From contig NEEC01000009.1 of NCBI GenBank assembly GCA_002189035.1, positions 2,666,001 to 2,730,000 of the forward strand: a DNA stretch of 64,000 bases. Reading direction: 5' to 3'. The translations under genes were made by a program, and so were the position numbers. Positions within the stretch are counted from its first letter, which is position 1. The number at the start of each line of letters is the position of its first letter. Below the pieces are notes generated by a model. That model did no database searches and had not been told where the DNA came from. It worked only from the letters and a program-made list of their open reading frames with translations. This DNA comes from Utricularia gibba (Eukaryota; Plantae; Magnoliophyta). Shown piece by piece: positions 8,783 to 54,276 of the stretch.

Positions 8783-10701
8783 CTAACTTATATCTGGAAT
8801 GGCATTGGGAAGGGAGCAGGGCAAAGATGGAGATGGCGACGCAGTAGACTTCCTCAGCCATTCCCTCTGCCTCTCATTAGCAAAGCAAAGCACAGTCTCT
8901 TCACATACTTGAAAGGTGGATGACGGCCGAGCCGGCTTGAACGTCTGTAGCTTCGAGTACTCCGTTAGCAGATGATACATGTAATCGTAGACACGATCCA
9001 TGTTCAGGGTTGCCATGAATTCCTGCGCTGCTCTCCCTATGGCCTCGGCCTGAGGTTATGTATGCAACGAGAGGTAATGAGAGGGAGCAGATGATCCAAA
9101 CAGGAGGAGTTTTTGTGAGGGTTGTATACCTCGTAGGAGTGTGTGTTGCCCCAATCAACTGCTGTTTTGATTTCATGGCAGATGTCGTAGGATGGGATCG
9201 GCAAGTAGTTCTTCTCAGGGATGAGGCCTCGGCTTAGGAAGTCTTGGTACTCGGGTGATATTATCAGAGGACATGATCCACAGGCTAAGATGTACTTCAA
9301 GCTTACAGACCAGGCATACCCTTCTGCATAGATCTTGTATCTGATAAGAACCAGGGATAAATGTTACAGAACGGTGCCAAAAAGAGCAGGCAACATGGAG
9401 CTCTGGAAGTTGTGAAATTTACCTGTAATCACATTGGGTTGCTAGCTTCGAGTCCTTGAAGCCTTCTCTTATTGCTGCGTCCCAGTCCTGACGATTGAGC
9501 AATGCTCCATGAACTTTTCTAACTACTCAAGAAACTGAACTAAAAAGCATCGTCTCCAAAAACATTATCTTTTTTGAAGTGATTGAATGCTTAAAATACG
9601 TTGAGAAGACAATTTGGTGCAGGAAAGGAAGGCAACATCTCCACTGCCAACTTTTTCTCCCAGAATTCATTAAAAGGGTACCTGAATCATGATCTGAGCC
9701 CTCCAGTTTCTAGAATGGTTGCACTGAAGAAGTTCCAATCTAATAGGAGATACGACACCGGGGTTGCCTTTCCAGTAAGCCAAGGGCCATTTCCTTCCCC
9801 AGCTTCTTCTCTTAGATCCTTGCTTAATGCTCTGAAACTCCTCATCCCATGGCGCAATGTTGATTTCTGACCTGTCTTCAAGCAACACTCAAACTTCAAC
9901 TGATTACAAAAACCAAATATCAAAGGAAATGCAAGCAAAACGTGGATCTTTACCATCCCCAAAAGGACCAATCAGGGAAAGGAATGTCCAAGTGATCCGG
10001 TGAAGTACAGTACCGGAAAAGCGGCAGAAGCTTAGAAGTATCGTCGGTTCTATTAATTGTGGGCTTATCCATACAATCGAACATCAAATCGACGTCGGGA
10101 ATCATTCCCGGAAACCGCCGCAGGAGCTGGAGAAACCCCCAAACCGTAAACATCGCGCGGCTCTGTACGCAAGCGTAGTAGAATTCAACGTACAGTTTCC
10201 CACTAATTATCACCACCCGAAAAGCCGCCCATTGCTTTGCCGCCATTACGTGGTCAATCGAAATCTTGGAATCTGCCCACGGTTCCAAATCATGAAAAAT
10301 GCTCCCGAAGAAATCAGGACACTGCATCGCCGACTGATCGGGCTTAAAATCGACGGTTTCCGCAGTGCGATTGCAGGATAAATAGATGCATTTGAACATC
10401 GTGGAAGCGGTGGAGTATTTCGAAACGGGTTCACGTATTTCGGCGGGGAAAATGTGCCATGGAGTGGGCTCGAGGTTATGCCCAGCAATCGTCTTCGTTT
10501 GGGTGATGAAACTGAACACCTTCAATCGTCGAACGAGAATCAATCACATAAATGACGTTAATGCACGAAAAAAAAACATTGAAGTAAACTCACCTGGAAG
10601 AGCAGGAGCAACGGTAAGCCACAGAGAGCGATGAGAAGAAGGGGACGAGGGACGAAATCCAGGGCGCGGGCCTGGCCCCGGACTGTGGAGAAAAGCCGCA
10701 T
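8783..10701 (-). CDS. Glycosyltransferase family 90 (CAP10/Rumi-like) type II membrane protein, 6 exons
   Basis: MRLFSTV...LLLLFQ|VFSFITQTKTIAGHNLEPTPWH, PDVDLMFDCMDKP, DIPFPDWSFWGW, AYWKGNP, YKIYAEGYAWSVSLKYILAC, MDRVYDYMYHLLTEYSKL; all junctions GT-AG and in phase. Confidence 0.9.
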
Positions 10702-34447: not shown

Positions 34448-36300
34448 TTTTTTCAAAATCAATTTTAATTCGGGAATTATTGTAAATAAAAAAAATATAA
34501 AAAATGTCTTGATTATTTTTTTCCAATTCAAAATGTGATTTTCTTAATATTATAATCAATTAAAATACAAACGCCACCAAAACATAACATTCGAAAAAGC
34601 GTGGACGCGGACACGGACACGGACTCGAGCTCGGGCACTTGGTTTCGTAGTTTCCGAAAGCGTTTAATCCTCATTAAAAAAAGGTAATTCCCGTCAAATC
34701 ACATTGATTAGCACAAAAGACGCGTTAATCCTGGCTAATTTTTTATTCGCCAATATTCAATTTTATGATATTAAAAAAAAGAAACCCAATTTTCCAGGCC
34801 CAATTATGAGCGGCGAAGACTTTCTATTTTTTAATTAATTATTATTTCAGTCTATGGCAATTTAGTATCTGAGCCTGTAACTTGCGCTATTTTGACTTGA
34901 AATTTTAGTTCACGTTTTCTATTTATTATAACCATTCTTTTTATATGCTTATGAACACAACTTTATGGTTTTATGTTATCCTTTTTTTGGGAAAAATTAT
35001 CATACAAGATTAAGAGTGTATTGTTATTTAATCACATCTTATTCCCCATCCATAATCAATGTGATATATTTAGGATATATCTTAACAAGTTGATGTTCTT
35101 AAACTTCCCCCCCCCCCCTTAATTTGTTAGTAATTATAAATAAAATGTTATACTCTTAAAATGAGAATTTCTGATCCCGCTATTTCTATTTTTCTAAAAA
35201 GTCTATTAGAATTGAATGATTCAACGTGATTCATTCATAACGACCTTCGAAACATTATACCGTATGAAACATGAATCATTATAATTTGAAAAATATCATG
35301 TTAGAAACCAATTGTATCAACGTGATGAATGAACTTCAAAACAGTATAAGGTGGTCAGCGTGAATCTTCGCATCCATCGTGGTAGACGACATTTATATTA
35401 CATATTTTTAGTAAAATATTCAAATTTTATTTTATTTAAATAATTTAATTTTGAATTTCGACGGTATGAATCATAGACCTGAGAGGGGCTGAGAGTTCCG
35501 AAGGAAAGATGTAAATTTAGGGTTAGTGGCGTAGCCGAGAGGGTACGGTCGTGGCATGGCATCAATCACAATGTTCGCTAGGCTACAACGCTTTTGTACA
35601 CCATAGCCCTGTTACTTAATTGCTTTTTCCCAATTAATTTATCCAAATCGGGACACTACTAACCACAATCCTATAAGAAAAAAATAAAATAAAACACTGG
35701 GTACATCGATTACATGGAATCATCCCCATCTTATGCAGGAGCATACTGTAACATTTTTGAAACGGAAAAATTTCTATTATTTGTATAAATAGTATAATTG
35801 ATCTAGAAATAGTATTTTAAATCATATTATTTAATAACCATTTATAATTGATCAAAAAATTGTTTGAAAATCGGGTAAAAATGAAAAAATTGGGACCAAT
35901 TATTAGAGATATACTTAACAATGTAGAAATAGTTTTGCAAAACGCCCATGATTATAATTTAAATTCAACATTTTTTACAACACTCGTCTAGTTCTCAATT
36001 GTGAAATATTGTGAAAATGTATTGTATTTGTTTTATAAATTATTAAATTGCATAATATGAGTTGACTATAGTATGTTTTTTGAATGTTTAACTATATTTT
36101 TTAATTTTAATTTTTAATTGGATTCAATAATATTAATCTTGGTACTCTACTAGAGCAAAACCCAACCACATAATTCCTTGGGGTTTTTTTGCCCTCTCCT
36201 ACTCGCCCTATGAATAGCGCCCCAGAAGCACACATTCCCTCTTCCTCCATTCTTGTCCTTTCATGTTTTTTTTTTTCTTTTTTGCCGGAAATCTCTTTCC

Positions 36301-37361
36301 ATGGAGCTCAGACAGGCGGCAGCTGCGAAGGCGGGTGTCTGCACCCGTGTCCGATACTTGATTCTGCTTCTTGTGGTCGCAGCCATCACCGTCTTCCAGT
36401 TGGATCTCCTTCGTGATTATTCAGAGCGCACCCTTCTCGATAACGCGGCTGTGGACATCGACGAGGCGAGGTTGAGGATGGAAGTCATTGAATTGATCGG
36501 AAGGAAGGAGTTTGGAGGGGAGTTGGGCGGCAAGTGGAGGCCCTCTGAGGATTCCATTGTGAGCTTCCGGAGTTATCTGACCGACTGGGCCGAAAGGAAG
36601 AGGTTCGAACCAGGCGTTATGAAGGAGGAGACGGCGGCTCTGTTCTTCCACGGAAGGCATTCCACTGTGCTGACGAATCGCACGGCCAGGTTCCGAAGCT
36701 GCGCCGTCGTGGGGAACAGTGGAATCCTCTTAAAGCATTATCACGGCAGCTTCATCGACGCCCACGAAATCGTGATACGCCTGAATTACGCCCCGACCCG
36801 GCGGTTCGAACGCCACGTCGGATCGAAGACGAGCATCTCCTTCATCAACAGCCACCACCACCACTACTGCTGCGCCTTCCGATCCATTCCTTACTGCAAG
36901 CGAAACTTCCAGGACGCCGCCACCGTCATGTACATGTGCCAGCCGATCCATTTCTTCGACTACCTCCGCTGCAATTCCACAGAGCACCCGCTTCTCATCA
37001 CGGACCCGAGATTCGACACGCTCTGCGCCCGCATCGCCAAGTACTATTCCCTGAAGCGGTTCGCGGCTGAGATGGGAGGGGATCTGGCGGAATGGGAGGA
37101 GACCCATGGCGGCGCCGAGTTCCATTACTCGTCGGGATGCAGGCGGTGATGCTGGCAGTCGCGATCTGCGAGAAGGTGAGTGTGTTTGGGTTCGGGAAGG
37201 CCACGAACGCGCCGCACCATTACCATGATCGGCAGAAATCGGAGCTCGCCCTTCATGACTTCCGGGCTGAGTATGATCTGTACGAAGATTTGAAGGAGAG
37301 GCCATGGAAGGTACCCTTCATTTCTCCCGACTTCCAATTTCCTTTATTTGAGATTTATTAG
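36301..37361 (+). CDS. GALT29A: GALT29A-like copy 2; one G missing at 37134-37136 (copy 1 has GGGG at 34219-34222), probably an assembly error
   Basis: Near-identical to copy 1; frame breaks at YSSG and resumes MQAVMLA in another frame; no other lesions seen. Confidence 0.8.
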
Positions 37362-38764: not shown

Positions 38765-39529
38765 TCATGCACGACCGGGGTTCGCAATCGATCGTCGGGC
38801 TTTGGCAGCGGTTTCGCGCTTGCAGTTGAAGTAGAGGGCGGCGACAGGGAACCCCAGGTCGTTTTCTCTAGCGAAATCCCTCGTGTTGAAGCCATCCCGA
38901 CAGGCGGGAACTTTTCCGGCGAGCCCTCTCTTCTTCTGCTCGAACAGCAGGAACGCGTAGCGGTGGATCCCGATGCACGGCCTCGGCATTTCGTAGCTCA
39001 GCAGTTCCTTCCCTGGGAGGGGGCCAGGGTTACCGCACAGCCCAGCTCAAGCTAAAATATAAGGTTTAGGCGTACCGAAGGAGGAGTCCGTGGAGCCAGG
39101 GATGTCGGTGACCAGCCTGAAGAGTCGAGTTTCAGAAGAATCTTGAAGGTTCTAAGCGTTCCAAACAAATCAAAATAGCTTACCAATGCAGGTGCTCCTT
39201 TAGATAGGGATCACTAGGGTTAGGAAAATCAGGATCTGTCATGATCTGATCCAAAAAAATAAATACAAATAGACAAAAAAAAAGCCTCATATTATCAAAA
39301 AATGCAGAAACCCATGATATTATACCAAGGTGAAGGATGATCTCATGTCAGCACCATGAATCTGGACCCTTGGTTTAGATTTCACGGTGGATGGGACGAT
39401 CTCATGCCCATTCCGAACCATCCGGTCGGCGGCGTAGCTCACGGACAGTTTCACAGAAGGTATGAAGTCATCGACAATGTCTCCGATCACATGTCCGATC
39501 ACGAGGGAGTCGGAGCGCAGGTGAGCCAT
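38765..39529 (-). CDS. CEN: PEBP family CEN/TFL1-like floral repressor, 184 aa; exons 39529-39326, 39245-39184 (62 bp), 39116-39076 (41 bp), 39012-38765
   Basis: Canonical 62 and 41 bp inner exons of FT/TFL1 genes; EHLHW (TFL1-type His, not FT Tyr); GIHRY; segment B ending RDGFNTR. Confidence 0.88.
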
Positions 39530-40163
39530 GGAGACACTTAATAGGAGGAAGGCGCTGAACAAGCTCTGGTTGAGGTACTCAATGCATGCAAGCAAGCGAC
39601 TTTATAGGAGGAGCTTGGAGAAGTATGATTTGACATTTTCTCTGAAGCATATTTGTTTTAAAAGGTGCTGCGAAATGCTTGAGAACTGTCATAGTTATAC
39701 TGGATTACGAGTCTTTGGGAAGATGCTCCTGGTGTGGTTTCAGCTCTTAGGATGATCCTTTGAGTGAGTTAAAGACACAGCAGCACCTTCTGCTGTCTGA
39801 TCTAACTACGAAGCGTGAGGCGCCTGAAATTCAAGAGCTGGCTGACAATCTGCAAATGGGATCTAAATTTTAGGTTCTTGGAGTTTCAGTCAAACAATTT
39901 GGACTAGAACACAAGTGAGCCACACATTTTGATGTCCAAGTAGTTCCCTAACGGGCCCTTCACTTACCCACATGTTTTGATGTCCAAGAGGTTCCCTAAT
40001 ATGCAAATAGTAAACCCATCTGAGCCCTCAAGTTTTGATGTAATCAAATGTTTTGATATCATGTTGAAATTAAAAATTTAAAAAATTAAACGATCATATG
40101 TAAAATTAAAATACATAAAAAATATATATCATATTAAAAAAAATTATATACGATAAATTAATA

Positions 40164-45760: not shown

Positions 45761-46346
45761 CTTCGGATCGGAATCAAGTCCCCTTGGAATCGCAAATTCT
45801 CCCCACGACGGCAAGAAAGGGGAAGGTAAAGGTAGTCGATCACTCGGAGTCGCTAGCACGTTCTAAATATATACAAATGCCCCTTTTTGGGCGGAGAATA
45901 CGTGTCCGTTTTAATCCGAAATGGGCCCTTTTTCCTTTTATTAAATCCAATATATTCCGCATATTTTTCATAAAATCCTGGTCTGACTTGATCATTTTTT
46001 AGGATATTATTTTTTTATTTAAATATGTTCATATCTCCATGTATAACTAATGTGAAATATTATCTAAATATATTATCATTAAATAATAAATAATAAATAT
46101 ATATATTATTGTTTATAAGTGAAGTTATTTGTTTCAATGTACATATTTATAAAATGAAATTTATTTTATTTAATTATCGTATATATTATTTTTATATTGA
46201 AAAAATGATTTCATTTTATATCACGTAAAATACATTCCAAAATCCAAAACACCGCTTCCTCGTAAGGTGTTATTATTCATAGAAGTCGAAGGTGTCATTT
46301 TTTATTCCCGTGATAAATAAACGTAGTGCACAACGTGCTGCGCGCT

Positions 46347-46805
46347 TCATGGGCACGAGGAGTTCGGGTATTGACAATTATGCAGAGGGTTGGGCCCTCC
46401 CGGAACCTCCCTAAGCTCCCGCATCGCCCTCAAAATCTCTTCATCGTAACTCGGAACCTCCTTCGCCTCCTCCAACAACTGTTCGCTCCATTTACGAGGA
46501 TATGAAAAATAAGCTCGAGGTTCTCAGGAATTTTCGCTATCAAATACAGGCGAAGATCATGTAAATTGTTTGCATATTACCTGGGAATGAAGAAGCTGCA
46601 CCTTGTGTACGTCTCTGGTGCAGTCTGCAAGTAACATTCGAAATTAGCGAAAGTGCGGGAATCAAATCGGAAAAAAAAATGATGATCGATCGGAACGGGC
46701 GGTTTCCGTTCAGGTGGTGATTCGATTCCACTGACCGGCGACGTTGGTGAAGACGAGGCTGATTAGAACGAGGAGGCAGACAGCGGCGGCGGCCTTGGAA
46801 ATCAT
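46347..46805 (-). CDS. Divergent CLV3-type CLE peptide precursor, 81 aa; exons 46805-46736, 46624-46581, 46478-46347; CLE motif REVPGGPNPLHN
   Basis: MISKAAAAVCLLVLISLVFTNVA|DCTRDVHKVQLLHSQ|LLEEAKEVPSYDEEILRAMRELREVPGGPNPLHNCQYPNSSCP*; signal peptide; GT-AG introns in phases 1 and 0; not in the ORF track. Confidence 0.85.
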
Positions 46806-47399
46806 ATTAACCGCCATTTTAATCCAAATCGGTGCTTTCAGATGAACTGCGCGTCGGGATATTTATAGACTGAAAAATATCCCGAATAACGGTAAATTGA
46901 ATGCGCTGTAATGTTTTCTTATTTTCAAAATATTTTCAACGTTGATGGCGAATCTGGGAAACGGATGGTAAATTCAAAAAAAAAGATATTTTTAATAAAT
47001 ACGAAAATTGCCGCATTCGTATTCGCAAAATTAGTAATTCAACATTTTTTTAAATAAATTAACACGAATATCCAATGAAATAAATACATGACAAATTACT
47101 ATATTGACCAAAAAATAAATATGGCAATTTTTAAGTAGTAGGGTGTGAGGTTTTGGTAAGGAGAAATAACTCCGTAAGATTCACCTTTTTTGGTCGATCA
47201 TTTACAAAAGCGGTTATAGATTATATATTTTAAAATAAATAATAAAATTAATTAAAATTAATATTAAAATTCACCTGTTGAGTGGGACCCATGAAATTTG
47301 TATGACAGTTGTGTTTGTGGGAGGGTGGTTGATTAGGTCTTAATCGGCGCTATGGTTGGGGAGCTTGGGCAACAAGGGCTGATCATGGTGGTGCCGTAG

Positions 47400-47950
47400 G
47401 CAGCGGCGATGGCGTTTTCTTCTTGCGGGAGAAGGCCGTGGGTCGAATCGAGCTTGGGCCGCCTTTCTAGTGGCAAGGTGTTTGAACGCATTGAATCGGA
47501 TTCGGAATTAAGCGTGGGTTCCCTTTGATGTCGCCATCCTTGAGGCATCACCGTGCGACCTTCTTCTCATGTGATGGTGGGGACGGCGGTTGCTGACATG
47601 TATTCGGAATGGGGTGCCTTTGATTTGGGTAAGATTATTATTTGATCACATGCGTTTGGCAGCAGTGGTTTCATGGAATGCGGTGGGGTGAGTTTGAAGA
47701 AGCAGTTAACATGTTCGATGAAATGCCCGACAAGCAATTTCAACATGCTGCTATCGAATATTTTATGAAGCCATTGGAGGTTTGGTTGGTGCGGGAGATA
47801 TGAGGATGAAGATGAAGGCTCATGAGGTGCAAAAGAAACCAGGAGTGGCGTCATTTAGCAGGGGATAAATATCATCCTGACACCGTTTGCGTTCACTTTG
47901 TTCTGAATCACCTGTTGGGTGAACTTAGACAACTTGCCTTCCTGCATGGC
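47400..47950 (+). pseudogene. Degenerate PLS-class (E/E+) pentatricopeptide repeat relic
   Basis: Fragments in shifting frames: VGTAVADMYSEWG, FDHMRLAAVVSWNA, GEFEEAVNMFDEMP, MKMKAHEVQKKPGVASF (E motif), AGDKYHPD (E+); stops and large deletions. Confidence 0.7.
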
Positions 47951-48025
47951 ACTACTACTGTCAAAACAAATCCTAATCCTAGAAAGTTTTCTGCTGCGGG
48001 TGCCAGATGCAGAACAGTTAGTCCC

Positions 48026-48482
48026 TCATGGAACTCCTGGCTTCTGAGGATCCTGTCCAGCATGGTGCAACGGGTCAGGCCCTGCCGGAACTGTCCTCAG
48101 CTTTGAGCCCTCTGCAATCTCCTTGTTCAAACCTCCACCATAACGGCTCTTCAAAGCCATCTTCCTCACTTCCAAGAGCAACTGAAAGGTGTACGCACCA
48201 TTAGGTCCCATATGCGCGTACAAAGAGTAAGTAACATTTTTTTTTTTTTTGTCTAATGCACGTCCTCCATTATTACCTCCCACGCAGAGCTTGCAGCTTG
48301 TCCACACTCCTGCTGCACTCTGTGATAACAACATCATTACATCTTGTATAAAATAAGAAATGCTCTCATGTTTTTAACACAGATAGCTAACCAGCAGCCT
48401 CACTGAGGAAGAAGAAGCAGACCAGCACCATCAACAAACAAGGAGCAGCAACCACAAAACCAGAACCCCCGTTTCTCGCCAT
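48026..48482 (-). CDS. CLV3: CLAVATA3 orthologue, 96 aa if one C is restored at 48279-48281; exons 48482-48392, 48319-48277, 48181-48026; CLE motif RTVPAGPDPLHH
   Basis: Signal peptide MARNGGSGFVVAAPCLLMVLVCFFFLSEAA, three-exon CLV3 layout, KLRTVPAGPDPLHHAGQDPQKPGVP* tail like eudicot CLV3, TATAAAT at 48533-48539. Confidence 0.85.
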
Positions 48483-49397
48483 TGGAACAACCTGAGACAC
48501 TGCGTAGAGGCCAAGCCACGAGGGAGGACGCATTTATAATGGGAGGAGGAAGCAACAAAAGAAGTTGGGGAGAAGGAATGATTGCATGAAGCAGCCATTT
48601 CCAAGTGAGTTCAGGGGCTATGAAATGACACAGAGGGTTTTTTTAGCACAAAAGAAGGGGGACTGAGGAAACGTTAATGATCATCCACTATTGGGCGTGG
48701 ATTGCTTTCTGGTCGGCGCCGTTCAGGAATGGATGGGCCGGGGGACTGTCACATGACATGGATGACGTCGTTGCTATGAGTTCTGAGGCATATGCACATT
48801 GCCACTGCAGTTGCTTCCTGCCTAACGGTCATGTCATAGGGATCTCCTTTCGCCCCGAAAAGGAGTTGCGTACTTTTATACAAATATATTAGATATTTTT
48901 AATACTTTTTTTAAAAAAATATTTATTTTTTATTTTTAAAATTTTTTCTGAAACGACATCACCTATAGTCGTCCACCGTGCCGTACATCAAGCGCCAGTG
49001 GGACAAAAGGTATGATGGAGACTGGTGAATAACAAAAACTTTCTCATACCTTGTAAATGTATAAGAAAATGATATATCTAGGAGGGCATTGTAACATATA
49101 ATTAATGATTTTGAATTATTTGTATTTAATAAATATATATTTAAAATTATATTTTATTTAGAATATATGTATAAATTAATAGCTTTTAAAAATATTTTTA
49201 AAGAATTTATGTGAATATTTTATAAAATAACACGTGAATTAGAAGATCTCTGCGTCTGCGCCGCCTTGCTGTTCTTGTGCTTGAAAATTTGTGCGTCGGG
49301 AGAAAAAATCCAAGAAATCGTTGATTCTTTGGGAAGCGTGCAGATTTGGATTCGGTTGGGGTTGGGGTCGATCGTCAGAGCTTCTGTTGCTGGTAGT

Positions 49398-50150
49398 ATG
49401 GCGGAGCGTGATGGACCCGTAACTGGGTATCCGGTCCCTAATCCCAACGGTTATGCCCCGAATCCGCCGCCGCCCGCCGCTTACCCCTATGCGGCTCCTC
49501 CTAACAACGCTTACTACAACCACCAAAGCAACAATCCTTACTACCTTTCGGAGCCGTATAATGTCCGCCGCACCGTCTGGCTGCGCCGTGTACTGGCTTT
49601 TTTCATCGCCGTAGTTGTGGTTTTCGCGGCTATTTTGTTCATTGTGTGGTTGGTCCTCCGGCCTTCCGTGCCGCAGTTCCGGGTAAACTCATTATCGATT
49701 TCGAATTTCACTTTGAGTAATGACTCCTTGGTATCCCTCTCCTCGGATGTCAATCTCACAGCCCGAAACCCTAGCAAGAGGATGTCTCTGTATTATGATC
49801 AGTTGGAAGCAAACCTTATTTACGAAGCATGGTCACTTTCAGAAACAATGGTATCCCCATTCTCGCAGGGTACTAGAAATGTGACTTCTTTTTCAGTAAG
49901 CTTCGCGGCGGCGGGCAGTTTTCTTGATGTGTCTGCGGCGCAGAGGGTAAACAGTGATTTGAGAAGCAATCAACATGTTCGGCTTGATTTGAGGATTTTA
50001 TCTAGAGTTCAATTTCAAGCTAAGGCTTTTAGAACTAGATGGAGGTTATTGAGGGTGTTTTGTGGGGATTTGACAATACAATTTACACGCACTAACAGTA
50101 GCTACTCCGGCTTCTTGGTTAGCCCAATGCAATGTCGTGTGGAGATTTGA
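49398..50150 (+). CDS. NDR1/HIN1-like (LEA_2 domain) protein, intronless, 250 aa
   Basis: Pro-rich N-terminus GYPVPNP, TM ...FIVWLVLRPSVPQFRV, NPSKRMSLYYD, VFCGDL, C-terminal C.V. Confidence 0.88.
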   Translation: MAERDGPVTGYPVPNPNGYAPNPPPPAAYPYAAPPNNAYYNHQSNNPYYLSEPYNVRRTVWLRRVLAFFIAVVVVFAAILFIVWLVLRPSVPQFRVNSLSISNFTLSNDSLVSLSSDVNLTARNPSKRMSLYYDQLEANLIYEAWSLSETMVSPFSQGTRNVTSFSVSFAAAGSFLDVSAAQRVNSDLRSNQHVRLDLRILSRVQFQAKAFRTRWRLLRVFCGDLTIQFTRTNSSYSGFLVSPMQCRVEI

Positions 50151-50649: not shown

Positions 50650-52297
50650 TTACATTTTCATGCATACAATTGGAACATTGATCACAACATTCTTGATGCT
50701 GCCATTTTTGTCATCTTCTTGTCTACTTTTTTCTCTGAAGTTCGCGAGTTCGCTGAGCTCCTTCACCGCTTCGCCAATGCTCTCCACGCTGCTAACTGTA
50801 TCGATCAGCATCGAAGCAACTCCGGCTAAGGGCGCAAATTGGAGCAGGTTGTTGTGACGATTCTCCGAAATCAAGAGGGTTCCTATGTTTTTGGCTGCTG
50901 TCTCCATACTACCTGTTTGGAGACTCGGCCGAGTCATCGTCTTCAGTGCCCGGGCAGCTTCTCTCAGCGCTTTCGCTGCCTCGTTGCTCACGCTTGTAAA
51001 CGCGTCTTGGAACGGATCTTGTATTTTTATTTCCTGCTGTCCGCGAGAGTGTTAGTGCTTTGTAGTGGTCAAAGGTGGATTTTTTAGGGTAATTGTCGAA
51101 GAAGGGGGTTTCTGGGATTCCATACATGAGTTTTCGAGTTGAGGAAGATGGTTAGAGCGTCGACTTTGCGGCCGCATTCCCTTGTAAGATTTCCAATTTT
51201 GAGGTACTGCTGCCATGGATGACAGTACTTAAAGCGTCCATGACCCGGTTCCCATCTTGCGAAGTTCGCCTGAAATTTACAGGTCACAGTCATGTTTCTC
51301 CATGGAATTGTAACTCAATAATTTTCATTTTTTCACACACCAAGATTTCTTCTTTGTTTTTGGAATCTGCTAGAATGCTGGTTATGGTGCTAACTGACTG
51401 TTTGCTCTTCTCTGTTTGTCCTCCTGCTTCTGTTGTTGTGAGGCAATCTGAAAAAGGAGGTTAGAAGAAGTTTTTAAGAGCATGCCATTATGTTTTAGAA
51501 TAGTTGTGCTTTTATTGTAGGCTTTGGAGTGAACCTTCCAGGGAATTCGCAATTTTGTCGATGTTTTTAGCAATGAGATTCTGAAGATCTTCTCCAGCCC
51601 AAACGGGACTAACAAAGATGGCCACCATCAGGCAAGTTGATGCACCAACTAGTATTGTGCATAGCCTTTTCTGAGCCAACATAAGTACATCATCTGTTCT
51701 GTAGCCTGATATGGAAATGAGGCAGAATGTTAAGATGAACATCAGCATTCCATAGTCGTATCTGGCTTTCACTTGGGGAAGGAATCGCAGGAATGTCGAA
51801 GTTACAGCTGCAGGAGTGAGGGAATCATATCTGAGCTTCCGATAGGTTCTAAAGTAACTTTCTTGCCTGTGTTACTTTACCATGTATGAAGACGAATAGT
51901 GCACTCAGTAAAGGTTCACCAGTCTTCCCTGAAAGAGTGGCCAAGTGATGAGCTCCGATGCCTAAGCCTCCGGCTACTAATGTTGCAAGTCCCTTATTTA
52001 CTCCTTTTCCCAGTGTTGCTCCTGGAAGATAACAAATGAGGAACTGTGTTTGTTCTTTAGGATTATTGATGCAGAATGTGATAGTATCATACCGACGGAG
52101 TACTCAAAGATGACCACAACTGTGATTACAGCCCATATTGAAGAGTCTCCAAAGTTGTTGTAGAATGGCTGAAGGTAATAGAACAGAGAAACAATTGTGA
52201 GCGCTAGGCCAACTTTAAATGAATGGATCAATCTCCTTGGATCCTCCTTTGCTATCTTGACCATTTGATGCACTGATTCATTCATTTTAGTCTCCAT
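50650..52297 (-). CDS. ALMT: Aluminium-activated malate transporter / anion channel (ALMT), 6 exons, apparently intact
   Basis: EDPRRLIHSFKVGLAL, WAVITVVVIFEYSV|GATLGKG, KARYDYG, PVWAGEDL, ANFARWEPGHG; exons join in phase; TATA near 52415. Confidence 0.9.
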
Positions 52298-54276
52298 GCT
52301 TGCGTAGATTCTTGCTTTTCTACTCCCTGAATGTCCATCTCAACAACTCAGTCTTCAACTCTACAACAAATTGAGTATCTGGCTTTGCTATGGGATTCTA
52401 CAAGCAGGCAACTTATATATATGAGTGGAGTCACTCCAGCATATGGCCCAAAGAATAGATCCTCTACGTATTGCCAGTTCCATACGAAATTTGCTGAAGA
52501 TGTGGTAGGAATGGCACATTCTCCCCACAAATGCATGGTAAAGGTAAAGATAGGTTAGTACCACTTGGTGATTACATTCGCCTAATGGAGGACAGTTTCA
52601 CTCAAAACTCAGTGATTTGGTCACTTTTTCTCTAGCTTGCCTTTGTATTTCCACCCTGTGTTGAAACGCTCATACCAACTATTGCGCATTGATGTTTAGT
52701 CAGAAACAAGTACAAGAGTGCTGACTGACATCAGATGAGATTTCTTAAACTGGGAGTTACTTTCATCCCTTTTTTACTCCCACTTTGTGTGGCCTTCATT
52801 TGCTAATTGCTTCCAGGTAGGCAGCTTTAGGTATGGAAGATCTTACACATATGGAACTAACTCCATTTGTCTGGGAACGAGACATTCCATGTCATGATGA
52901 GCTTTCAGTAGCTTTTTTCTTGTTGTGACTTTTCATTTGAGCCCTTGGTTTGGAATACCTCCAGCTACAGCAGCATATATGGATTTGATTTGATTCTCAT
53001 TACACCATTATCTCCTGTCCCAGCCATGCATATCACCCTTTTCTCTTTCTTGTCCAGCATTGAGGTTTTTAGACAAGTGATGTTACACCCAACAAACACA
53101 TCACCATTGCAGTTTTAAGTAGAATGAATGAAGGATTCTGGCATTATCTTCAACACATATATTCTATTGCTGTATTATTTCCCAGGACATGTACCTCATG
53201 GATGGATTCTCCAGACAGGGGTGGAGGCAGGGATGGAACATCATGAACCTGATCCTCCTGCTCAGTTCGTGGAACACATGAATCCACGGATGCCCCCCCC
53301 TGCGGTTCGTGCATCTACCGTTGCTTTTTCTTGTGTGTGTAATCTGCAGATGCCCGGCCTGGTTCCAATGGTAATGCCGTAGAAGGATCTAGACATCTAG
53401 TCCTAAGCATTCAGTTCCTGTGGATGGGATCCATCAAGGTAAACGCACTAGTAGCTCCTTCCTTTCCATGGCATGCTGATATTCTTCTTACCAGCAATAC
53501 CAGTTTATGTTAGCAACAGATGCTTTGGCTGTCGGAGTATCGGGTCTGATCGGTACTAGGTTTCATCGGTTCCGGAACCGTCGGTTTCGATTATTATGAT
53601 TCATTAGTTAATCAACTCTTTATATAATTTGAGTAAATTACTGATTTGAAATTATGTTTAATTTTATATTTAATTAGATTCAAATATACTATTTTAATTC
53701 TAGATAATTATTTTTTATATAATATTTTATAATATATTAAATTGTAAAAAAAGTGTAATTTAAAATTATGAATATTTTTAAAATGGATTATTTAATCAGT
53801 TTGGATTTTATTTTTTAAATATTTTTCGTAAACAAAATAAATTAATAATTAAAGAGAAGAAATTGCAGCATAGTAAATATTTTCGAGTAAAGAAATGTGC
53901 TTTAATCCTAATAATTGAGATGCAGGCGTGGACTCCTTTCATTGGTAGAGGCCAGGGTGGCAGTAGGGAGTGTCGTTTTTATTTATTTATTTAATTGGTT
54001 TTGGTGTATTAGACAATTACCGCGGAGCCCCTGTGGGTCCCGTGACTGTAGCCGTTTTAACTGAAGAAACGGAAAAAGTGAAATTACCCCTCGCGACAAA
54101 GTTGAAAGTCGGCACTCTGTAATTTCTTCTTCTTTTTGTTGTTGTTTTTGCGGATTCTTCTTTTTCCATATCGGTTTTTCGAAGATCCGCTCTTCTTCCT
54201 CCTTTTTTCTCCAAGGGATTTCACCAGTTTGGCTGATTGGATCCGAATTCACATACCGGTAAAAAAAAGATCGGAA

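Follow-up and report, generated by a model that had tools for sequence, protein, structure and literature searches.

Two CLE genes on the minus strand of the window

The window analysed here is a stretch of 64,000 nucleotides (nt) from contig NEEC01000009.1 of the bladderwort Utricularia gibba, and all positions refer to this window. A scan for CLE dodecapeptide motifs identified exactly two, both on the minus strand, RTVPAGPDPLHH in a gene here called gene A and REVPGGPNPLHN in a second gene here called gene B, and these two genes alone match R-x-V-P-x-G-P-D/N-P-L-H-H/N near the C-terminus. Their similarities point to gene A as the CLV3 gene of this species and to gene B as an old CLV3-derived neighbour. 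The distance from the stop codon of gene A to the ATG of gene B is 1,208 nt. The features of the two genes are as follows.

48576-48633, minus strand: CLV3 proximal promoter module of gene A, with CTGTGTCATTTCATA at 48633-48619 and AATGGCTGCTTCATGCAATCATTC at 48599-48576
48532-48538, minus strand: TATAAAT box of gene A, some 50 nt upstream of the start codon (direct reading; aligns with CTATAAAT of the orthologues)
48482-48026, minus strand: gene A overall, ATG at 48482, CLE motif RTVPAGPDPLHH at 48097-48062
48392-48482, minus strand: gene A exon 1, coding part of 91 nt, signal peptide, donor CTG/GTTAGC, phase 1 (direct reading and exon model)
48277-48319, minus strand: gene A exon 2, 43 nt, ECSRSVDKLQALRG plus 2 nt, donor GAG/GTAATA (exon model and alignment with orthologues)
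48026-48181, minus strand: gene A exon 3, RTVPAGPDPLHH, tail AGQDPQKPGVP, stop codon (exon model and motif scan)
46860-46867, minus strand: TATAAATA box (TATA box) of gene B, 50 nt upstream of the start codon (direct reading)
46817-46347, minus strand: gene B overall, ATG at 46817, exons of 82, 44 and 132 nt, CLE motif REVPGGPNPLHN at 46412-46377
46736-46817, minus strand: gene B exon 1, 82 nt, signal peptide MAVNMISKAAAAVCLLVLISLVFTNVA, donor CCG/GTCAGT, phase 1 (direct reading and exon model)
46581-46624, minus strand: gene B exon 2, 44 nt, DCTRDVHKVQLLHSQ, donor CAG/GTAATA, phase 0 (exon model and alignments)
46347-46478, minus strand: gene B exon 3, REVPGGPNPLHN, tail CQYPNSSCP of 9 amino acids, stop codon (exon model and motif scan)
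46301-46306, minus strand: AATAAA of gene B, a likely polyadenylation signal (direct reading)

All four introns of the two genes are of the GT-AG type and 72-111 nt long. The exons of gene B join in frame and encode a precursor of 85 amino acids that comprises a hydrophobic leader, the CLE motif and, at its end, the CQYPNSSCP tail. The precursor of gene A is about 96 amino acids long, and hydrophobic cores, the predicted signal peptides, are visible at residues 9-26 in both. No Pfam model matches the precursor of A or of B. The two dodecapeptides are identical at eight of the 12 positions and differ at positions 2, 5, 8 and 12. Gene B contains neither the CLV3-type D8 and H12 nor the tail NG..P.KP.TP, but has N8, N12 and CQYPNSSCP instead. 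A preliminary description of this stretch had already placed two CLE genes 1.2 kb apart on this strand, each with three exons, a signal-peptide exon ending in phase 1, an exon 2 of 43 or 44 nt and a GTAATA donor; it had also aligned the exon 2 peptides, listed the four differing positions and reported the tail of gene B. The motif scan, the exon models and the alignment statistics given below bear out each of these points.

Gene A and the CLV3 genes of Lamiales

In a HMMER search with exon 3 of gene A against 1.84 billion representatives, 17 proteins were recovered with E-values up to 0.001. The best single-motif matches were the CLV3 proteins of Perilla, Sesamum and Buddleja (Lamiales), with E-values from 5e-9 to 2e-6, and the further matches were CLV3 proteins of other eudicots, such as the “protein CLAVATA 3” of Prosopis. 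The dodecapeptide of gene A is identical at 11 of 12 positions to RRVPAGPDPLHH, which is encoded by each of the three CLV3 genes from Lamiales in the comparison. The CLV3 genes of Buddleja (KAG8387440.1), Sesamum and Perilla also resemble gene A in the promoter module, the exon layout and the tail, and in having an exon 2 that begins with EC(S/R) and an exon 3 that begins with L(L/F)LE. The exon 1 donor of gene A is at a position homologous to the donors in all three. Unlike them, gene A has a threonine at position 2 of the dodecapeptide and, as assembled, an exon 2 of 43 nt.

The promoter module was matched once in the window, upstream of gene A only, and never in 100 shuffles. The CLV3 genes of Sesamum, Perilla, Buddleja and tomato are preceded by this module too, with its elements (CTGTGTCATTTCATA, AATGGCTGCTTCATGCAATCATTC and TATAAAT) in the same order, and the core AATGGCTGC..GCAATCATTC, followed by CTGTGTCAT and TATAAAT, is common to these four asterid CLV3 genes and gene A. 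We consider the module to be a candidate core cis-element of CLV3. An alignment of the 3' flanks revealed no conserved element common to A or B and the CLV3 3' regions of Lamiales. A LEA_2/NHL gene (49266-50150, plus strand) is located upstream of gene A, and a LEA_2 gene is located upstream of CLV3 in Sesamum too. Because the best HMMER matches are CLV3 proteins, the promoter module is shared, and the neighbourhood contains a LEA_2 gene and the relic of a PPR gene (see below), gene A is, as judged from these sequence comparisons, the CLV3 orthologue.

A consensus of the module, CAGTGTCATATCAT ... AAATGGCTGCATC.GCAATCATTC ... CTATAAAT, is kept from tomato to Lamiales. In the fetched loci it is placed at approximately 9750-9795 in Sesamum and 9655-9715 in Perilla, and upstream of 10001 in tomato and Buddleja. 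The deposited CLV3 models of Sesamum (KAL2239281.1, locus 10001-10389) and Perilla (KAH6773006.1, 10001-10356) begin in intron 1 or exon 2. The true signal-peptide exon of these genes is located roughly 120-160 nt upstream of the model start, behind a TATA box, and the CLV3 model of Sesamum latifolium (KAL0460003.1) likewise misses it.

A one-base break in the assembled exon 2

The splice sites and phases of gene A are conserved, yet its exon 2 of 43 nt puts the assembled gene out of frame. Joining 91 and 43 nt leads to phase 2, whereas the conserved acceptor cag/TTG at 48181 requires phase 0. The CLV3 genes of Buddleja and Sesamum have an exon 2 of 44 nt, and that of Perilla has one of 47 nt. 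By alignment, gene A lacks one base of exon 2, and the deficit is within the last few bases, ..CGTGGGAG/GT, at a GGG run. By the same comparisons, the frame that encodes ECSRSVDKLQALRG is the ancestral frame of the gene, since it is homologous to exon 2 of gene B and fits the ECS.../ECR... start of exon 2 in Buddleja and Sesamum. The alternative frame has no homology to exon 2 of gene B (p 0.68).

The break is probably an error of the assembly consensus, in which a G was dropped from the G run, rather than a real lesion. We draw this conclusion because of the position at the GGG run, because a similar break is found elsewhere in the window and because the remainder of gene A (promoter module, ATG, signal peptide, splice sites, dodecapeptide and tail) is intact. 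The second break is at another GGG run, 37134-37136, and has a signature like that of the break in gene A. There, the reading passes from ..HYSSG in one frame to MQAVMLAVAICEKVSVFGFG in the next, and the Pfam positions run on across the break, which is probably an assembly consensus error as well. It falls within a Glyco_transf_29 (sialyltransferase-like) gene at about 36253-37361 on the plus strand, as a -1 frame change inside a conserved motif (37125-37145). The bladderwort CLV3 model requires a one-base check before use.

Other exon models for gene A were also considered. A rescue donor after 48403 was rejected since the intron would start with TG, not GT, and the true GT, one base earlier, keeps the wrong phase. 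A brute-force enumeration of GT/GC-AG models gave thousands that are in frame and was uninformative. The only in-frame model that retains three of the four orthologous splice sites uses an acceptor with exon 3 starting at 48164.

Probable origin of gene B from CLV3

The layout of gene B, with a phase-1 junction, an exon 2 of 44 nt and a phase-0 junction, is that of the CLV3 genes of Lamiales; the CLV3 gene of Buddleja has exons of 76, 44 and 165 nt with the same phases. The exon 2 peptides ECSRSVDKLQALRG of gene A and DCTRDVHKVQLLHSQ of gene B align with a score of 34, which was reached by none of 5000 shuffles (p about 2e-4). The whole variable domain of B is also homologous to that of A (p about 2e-4). 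Exon 2 of gene B starts with DCT, and (S)DC(S/T) is found at this point in many eudicot CLV3 proteins. Its exon 3 starts with LLEE, compared with LLLE or LFLE in the CLV3 genes of Lamiales. In a comparison with six tomato CLE precursors, gene B obtained its best score with tomato CLV3 (p 0.045). A tblastn search with exon 3 of gene B against the four fetched loci (tomato, Buddleja, Sesamum and Perilla) matched the CLV3 genes only, and the match to Buddleja CLV3 reaches 11 residues upstream of the CLE motif, with the common stretch SY.D.E...ELR.VP.

The CLV3 genes of Lamiales are thus like gene B in layout, in the DCT and LLEE starts and in the SY.D.E stretch. Gene B differs from them in E2, G5, N8 and N12, in the tail with a pair of cysteines that replaces NGQDPKKPRTP, and in the absence of the promoter module. 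The predicted derivation of gene B from CLV3 is well supported by the gene structure, the homology of exon 2 and the linkage to gene A, and the phylogeny was not relied on for this conclusion.

Age of the duplication and probable selection on gene B

A blastn comparison of the two loci recovered the CLE motif only, with no similarity in non-coding sequence. Synonymous sites are saturated between A and B (pS 0.69-0.72), with a pN of 0.38 and an omega of approximately 0.2-0.3. The synonymous distance between A and B is at least that between A and the other CLV3 genes of Lamiales, a comparison that covers about 58 synonymous sites, which are saturated and too noisy for dating. The omega values of gene B against any CLV3 gene (0.21-0.40) are close in range to those of true orthologous CLV3 pairs within Lamiales (0.20-0.38).

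In simulations of neutral drift, the open reading frame (ORF), the four splice sites and the six key CLE residues survived together in 3.6% of the copies at 0.1 substitutions per site, and in 0.02% at 0.25 substitutions per site. Together with the intactness of gene B, these simulations argue for purifying selection on gene B during most of its history.

Preferred explanation and the evidence against it

The explanation that we favour, and to which we give a somewhat better than even chance, is that gene A is the CLV3 orthologue and gene B an old proximal duplicate of CLV3 that would have been kept by purifying selection. Several observations weigh against it or against the interpretation in the preliminary description. 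With the four orthologous splice sites, the product of gene A as assembled contains stop codons before the CLE motif, and the model of gene A in the preliminary description, which used 91 and 43 nt before the acceptor at 48181, was out of frame for the reason given above. The tandem arrangement claimed in that description is loosened by the PPR relic, which stands between A and B, just 3' of A; the copies are local and on the same strand, but with the relic between them the pair is proximal, not strictly tandem. The saturated synonymous sites and the lack of non-coding similarity between A and B imply that the duplication is ancient, and this weakens the earlier interpretation of the pair. The CLV3 promoter module was not found upstream of gene B, either in the window scan or in the promoter alignment. 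In tomato, Buddleja, Sesamum and Perilla alike, neither a second CLE motif nor a relic of one was present at distances of up to 10 kb from CLV3; gene B is either specific to the Lentibulariaceae lineage or has been lost or moved elsewhere. A precursor phylogeny, as proposed in the preliminary description, gave a divided answer on the origin of gene B. The best tree placed A and B as sisters (75/80) inside the Lamiales CLV3 clade (97/94), in line with the introns, exon 2 and the similarity to Buddleja. However, when tomato CLE38, CLE51, CLE5 and CLE23 were added, a tree in which gene B was forced to group with them was as likely as the free tree in the approximately unbiased (AU) test (p-AU 0.52). 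Finally, no transcript of gene B was detected in RNA runs X6, X8 and X9, which contain 0.00 of the sampled words of 46270-46850, and an exact look-up of six candidate products of A and B in the protein collection found none.

The last two observations are to be read together with other results on expression and annotation. The RNA runs are small (9-86 million letters) and none is shown to be of meristem tissue. For the wider interval 46300-48550, the fraction of words present in runs X6-X10 is 0.16-0.33, and since the words of gene B are absent, something in the part that contains gene A and the PPR relic (46851-48550) is transcribed. A homology search of the protein collection gave no match for A or B, but it also missed tomato CLV3, which is present there, so that this blank carries little weight. 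Two genes at the bladderwort CLV3 locus appear to have been missed by standard annotation, as neither product was found in the collection.

Under the favoured explanation, gene B would act like any A-type CLE gene. A TATA-driven transcript would be spliced into three exons, and the signal peptide would take the precursor of 85 amino acids into the secretory pathway. The dodecapeptide REVPGGPNPLHN would be excised and the cysteine-containing tail trimmed, after which Pro4 and Pro7 would be hydroxylated and the hydroxyproline at position 7 arabinosylated. The peptide may then be read by leucine-rich repeat receptor kinases of the CLV1/BAM type. Because the CLV3 promoter module has been lost in gene B, its expression probably differs from that of gene A in pattern or level. 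Gene B would then stand beside CLV3 as a diverged partner with a partly redundant or subfunctionalised role, by analogy with CLE9 in the Solanaceae. The preliminary description had tentatively suggested a new stem-cell signalling module with a shift in receptor preference. However, the CLV3 peptide is reported to be tolerant of changes at positions 2 and 5 (PMC12661658), and N8 and N12 occur commonly among other CLE peptides (tomato CLE list, PMC9670457 supplement), so that the rewritten peptide of gene B need not mean a new receptor preference.

Alternative explanations

An alternative that we consider rather unlikely is that gene A truly lacks one base in exon 2, so that CLV3 is either a recent pseudogene or rescued by a non-orthologous acceptor. 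It accounts directly for the frame of the assembled gene with its four orthologous splice sites, and an acceptor AG at 48166-48165, with exon 3 starting at 48164, would restore the frame at the cost of LLLEV. Of the words that make up the stretch with A and B, DNA runs of several samples contain 0.56-0.96, which means that the assembly is not grossly wrong here. On the other hand, the break occurs at a GGG run, as does the one in the Glyco_transf_29 gene, and the remainder of gene A, including the tail and a dodecapeptide with a single difference from RRVPAGPDPLHH, is intact and conserved. A step further, and quite improbable in our view, is that the frameshift is real and that the bladderwort relies wholly or partly on gene B as a replaced or re-tuned ligand of the shoot stem cells. 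Should this be true, the ligand would carry E2, G5, N8 and N12, its own promoter and a new tail, in a plant that is rootless and in which organ identities are blurred.

Doubt may also be directed at gene B, which could be silent or very recently dead, with no working promoter. The absence of gene B from every listed RNA run, its lack of the CLV3 promoter module and the failure to find an orthologue or an annotated protein would all fit such a state. Yet the ORF, the four canonical splice sites, the TATA box at -50, the AATAAA and all key CLE residues have stayed intact although synonymous divergence is saturated, and genes of the CLV3 class are active in a small number of cells, where a small RNA run can easily miss them; we regard a dead gene B as distinctly unlikely. 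Less likely still is that gene B is an unrelated N8/N12 CLE gene, similar to the CLE9-13 genes with ..VPGGPNPLHN, that merely happens to be near CLV3. Arabidopsis CLE9/10 belong to this class, as do tomato CLE38, CLE51 and CLE5. The dodecapeptide of gene B is identical at 11 of 12 positions to that of tomato CLE38 (RIVPGGPNPLHN) and at only eight to that of gene A, and the forced grouping with the tomato genes was as good as the free tree. The first of these similarities explains the second, since the AU test cannot discriminate when the dodecapeptide of gene B is so close to that of CLE38. The tomato genes of this class consist of a single exon and end at the dodecapeptide, whereas gene B has the intron positions, the phases and the 44-nt exon 2 of CLV3. 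The variable domain of gene B, moreover, matches that of gene A and not those of CLE38, CLE51 and CLE5 (p 0.6-0.8), which are unrelated to it, and gene B is only 1.2 kb from CLV3.

Comparison with known CLV3 paralogues

Paralogues that buffer CLV3 are established in other plants. The origin of SlCLE9 falls shortly before the diversification of the Solanales, and the gene was lost several times afterwards (Kwon et al. 2022, bioRxiv 10.1101/2022.01.03.474791). Like genes A and B, SlCLV3 and SlCLE9 are a CLV3 gene and an old three-exon paralogue derived from it, in which both the dodecapeptide and the promoter have diverged (bioRxiv 10.1101/2022.01.03.474791; PMC12661658). SlCLE9 buffers the loss of CLV3 in tomato, and gene B is a candidate for a comparable role. 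SlCLE9 retains D8 and H12 (REAPMSPDPLHH), in contrast to N8 and N12 in gene B, and it is located on chromosome 6, with SlCLV3 on chromosome 11, whereas gene B is linked to gene A. The origin of SlCLE9 before the Solanales and its position on another chromosome indicate an event separate from the one that produced gene B.

In spiny Solanum species, local duplications of CLV3 have restored redundancy (Benoit et al. 2025, PMC11964936). SpriCLV3a/b and SaetCLV3a/b resemble A and B in that a local duplication has left two copies in one neighbourhood, with genes or transposons between them (PMC11964936). However, the spiny Solanum copies are young, and SpriCLV3a and SpriCLV3b are identical in coding and cis-regulatory sequence, whereas A and B are saturated at synonymous sites, encode different peptides and have no similarity in non-coding sequence.

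Back-up copies of CLV3 determine the degree to which mutations alter the size of the meristem and, as a consequence, the number of organs; they have been studied so far mainly in the Solanaceae, maize and Arabidopsis. The A/B pair is a further case of this known pattern and introduces no new principle. As an independent, old, CLV3-linked paralogue with a changed peptide in a Lamiales plant of unusual body form, it would offer a further natural experiment on divergence in the peptide versus the promoter. The U_gibba_v2 assembly was included in a pan-angiosperm CLE scan from 2025 (PMC12661658, supplement). Our literature search recovered no text on CLE genes of Utricularia, and neither dodecapeptide string was matched.

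Neighbouring genes

One further feature belongs to the stretch between the two CLE genes.

47565-47853, plus strand: relic of a PPR (E-motif) gene (tblastn with PPR proteins of Sesamum and Buddleja; weak Pfam PPR match; neighbours in other asterids)

A PPR E-motif gene is the direct 3' neighbour of CLV3 in Sesamum, Buddleja and tomato, where it is on the opposite strand in convergent orientation. The relic in the window retains residues of about 131-192 and 442-471 only, that is, around 90 of approximately 525 codons, and the middle has been deleted. It illustrates how a gene is lost by deletion where the genome is compact.

A PEBP gene of the TFL1/CEN type, identified by eye, has exons at 38765-39595 on the minus strand; the last exon alone has no Pfam match. 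On the other side of the CLE genes, an ALMT malate-channel gene (50650-52300, minus strand) is located upstream of gene A. In Sesamum, the ALMT gene is on the other side of CLV3, and these opposite positions suggest a local rearrangement.

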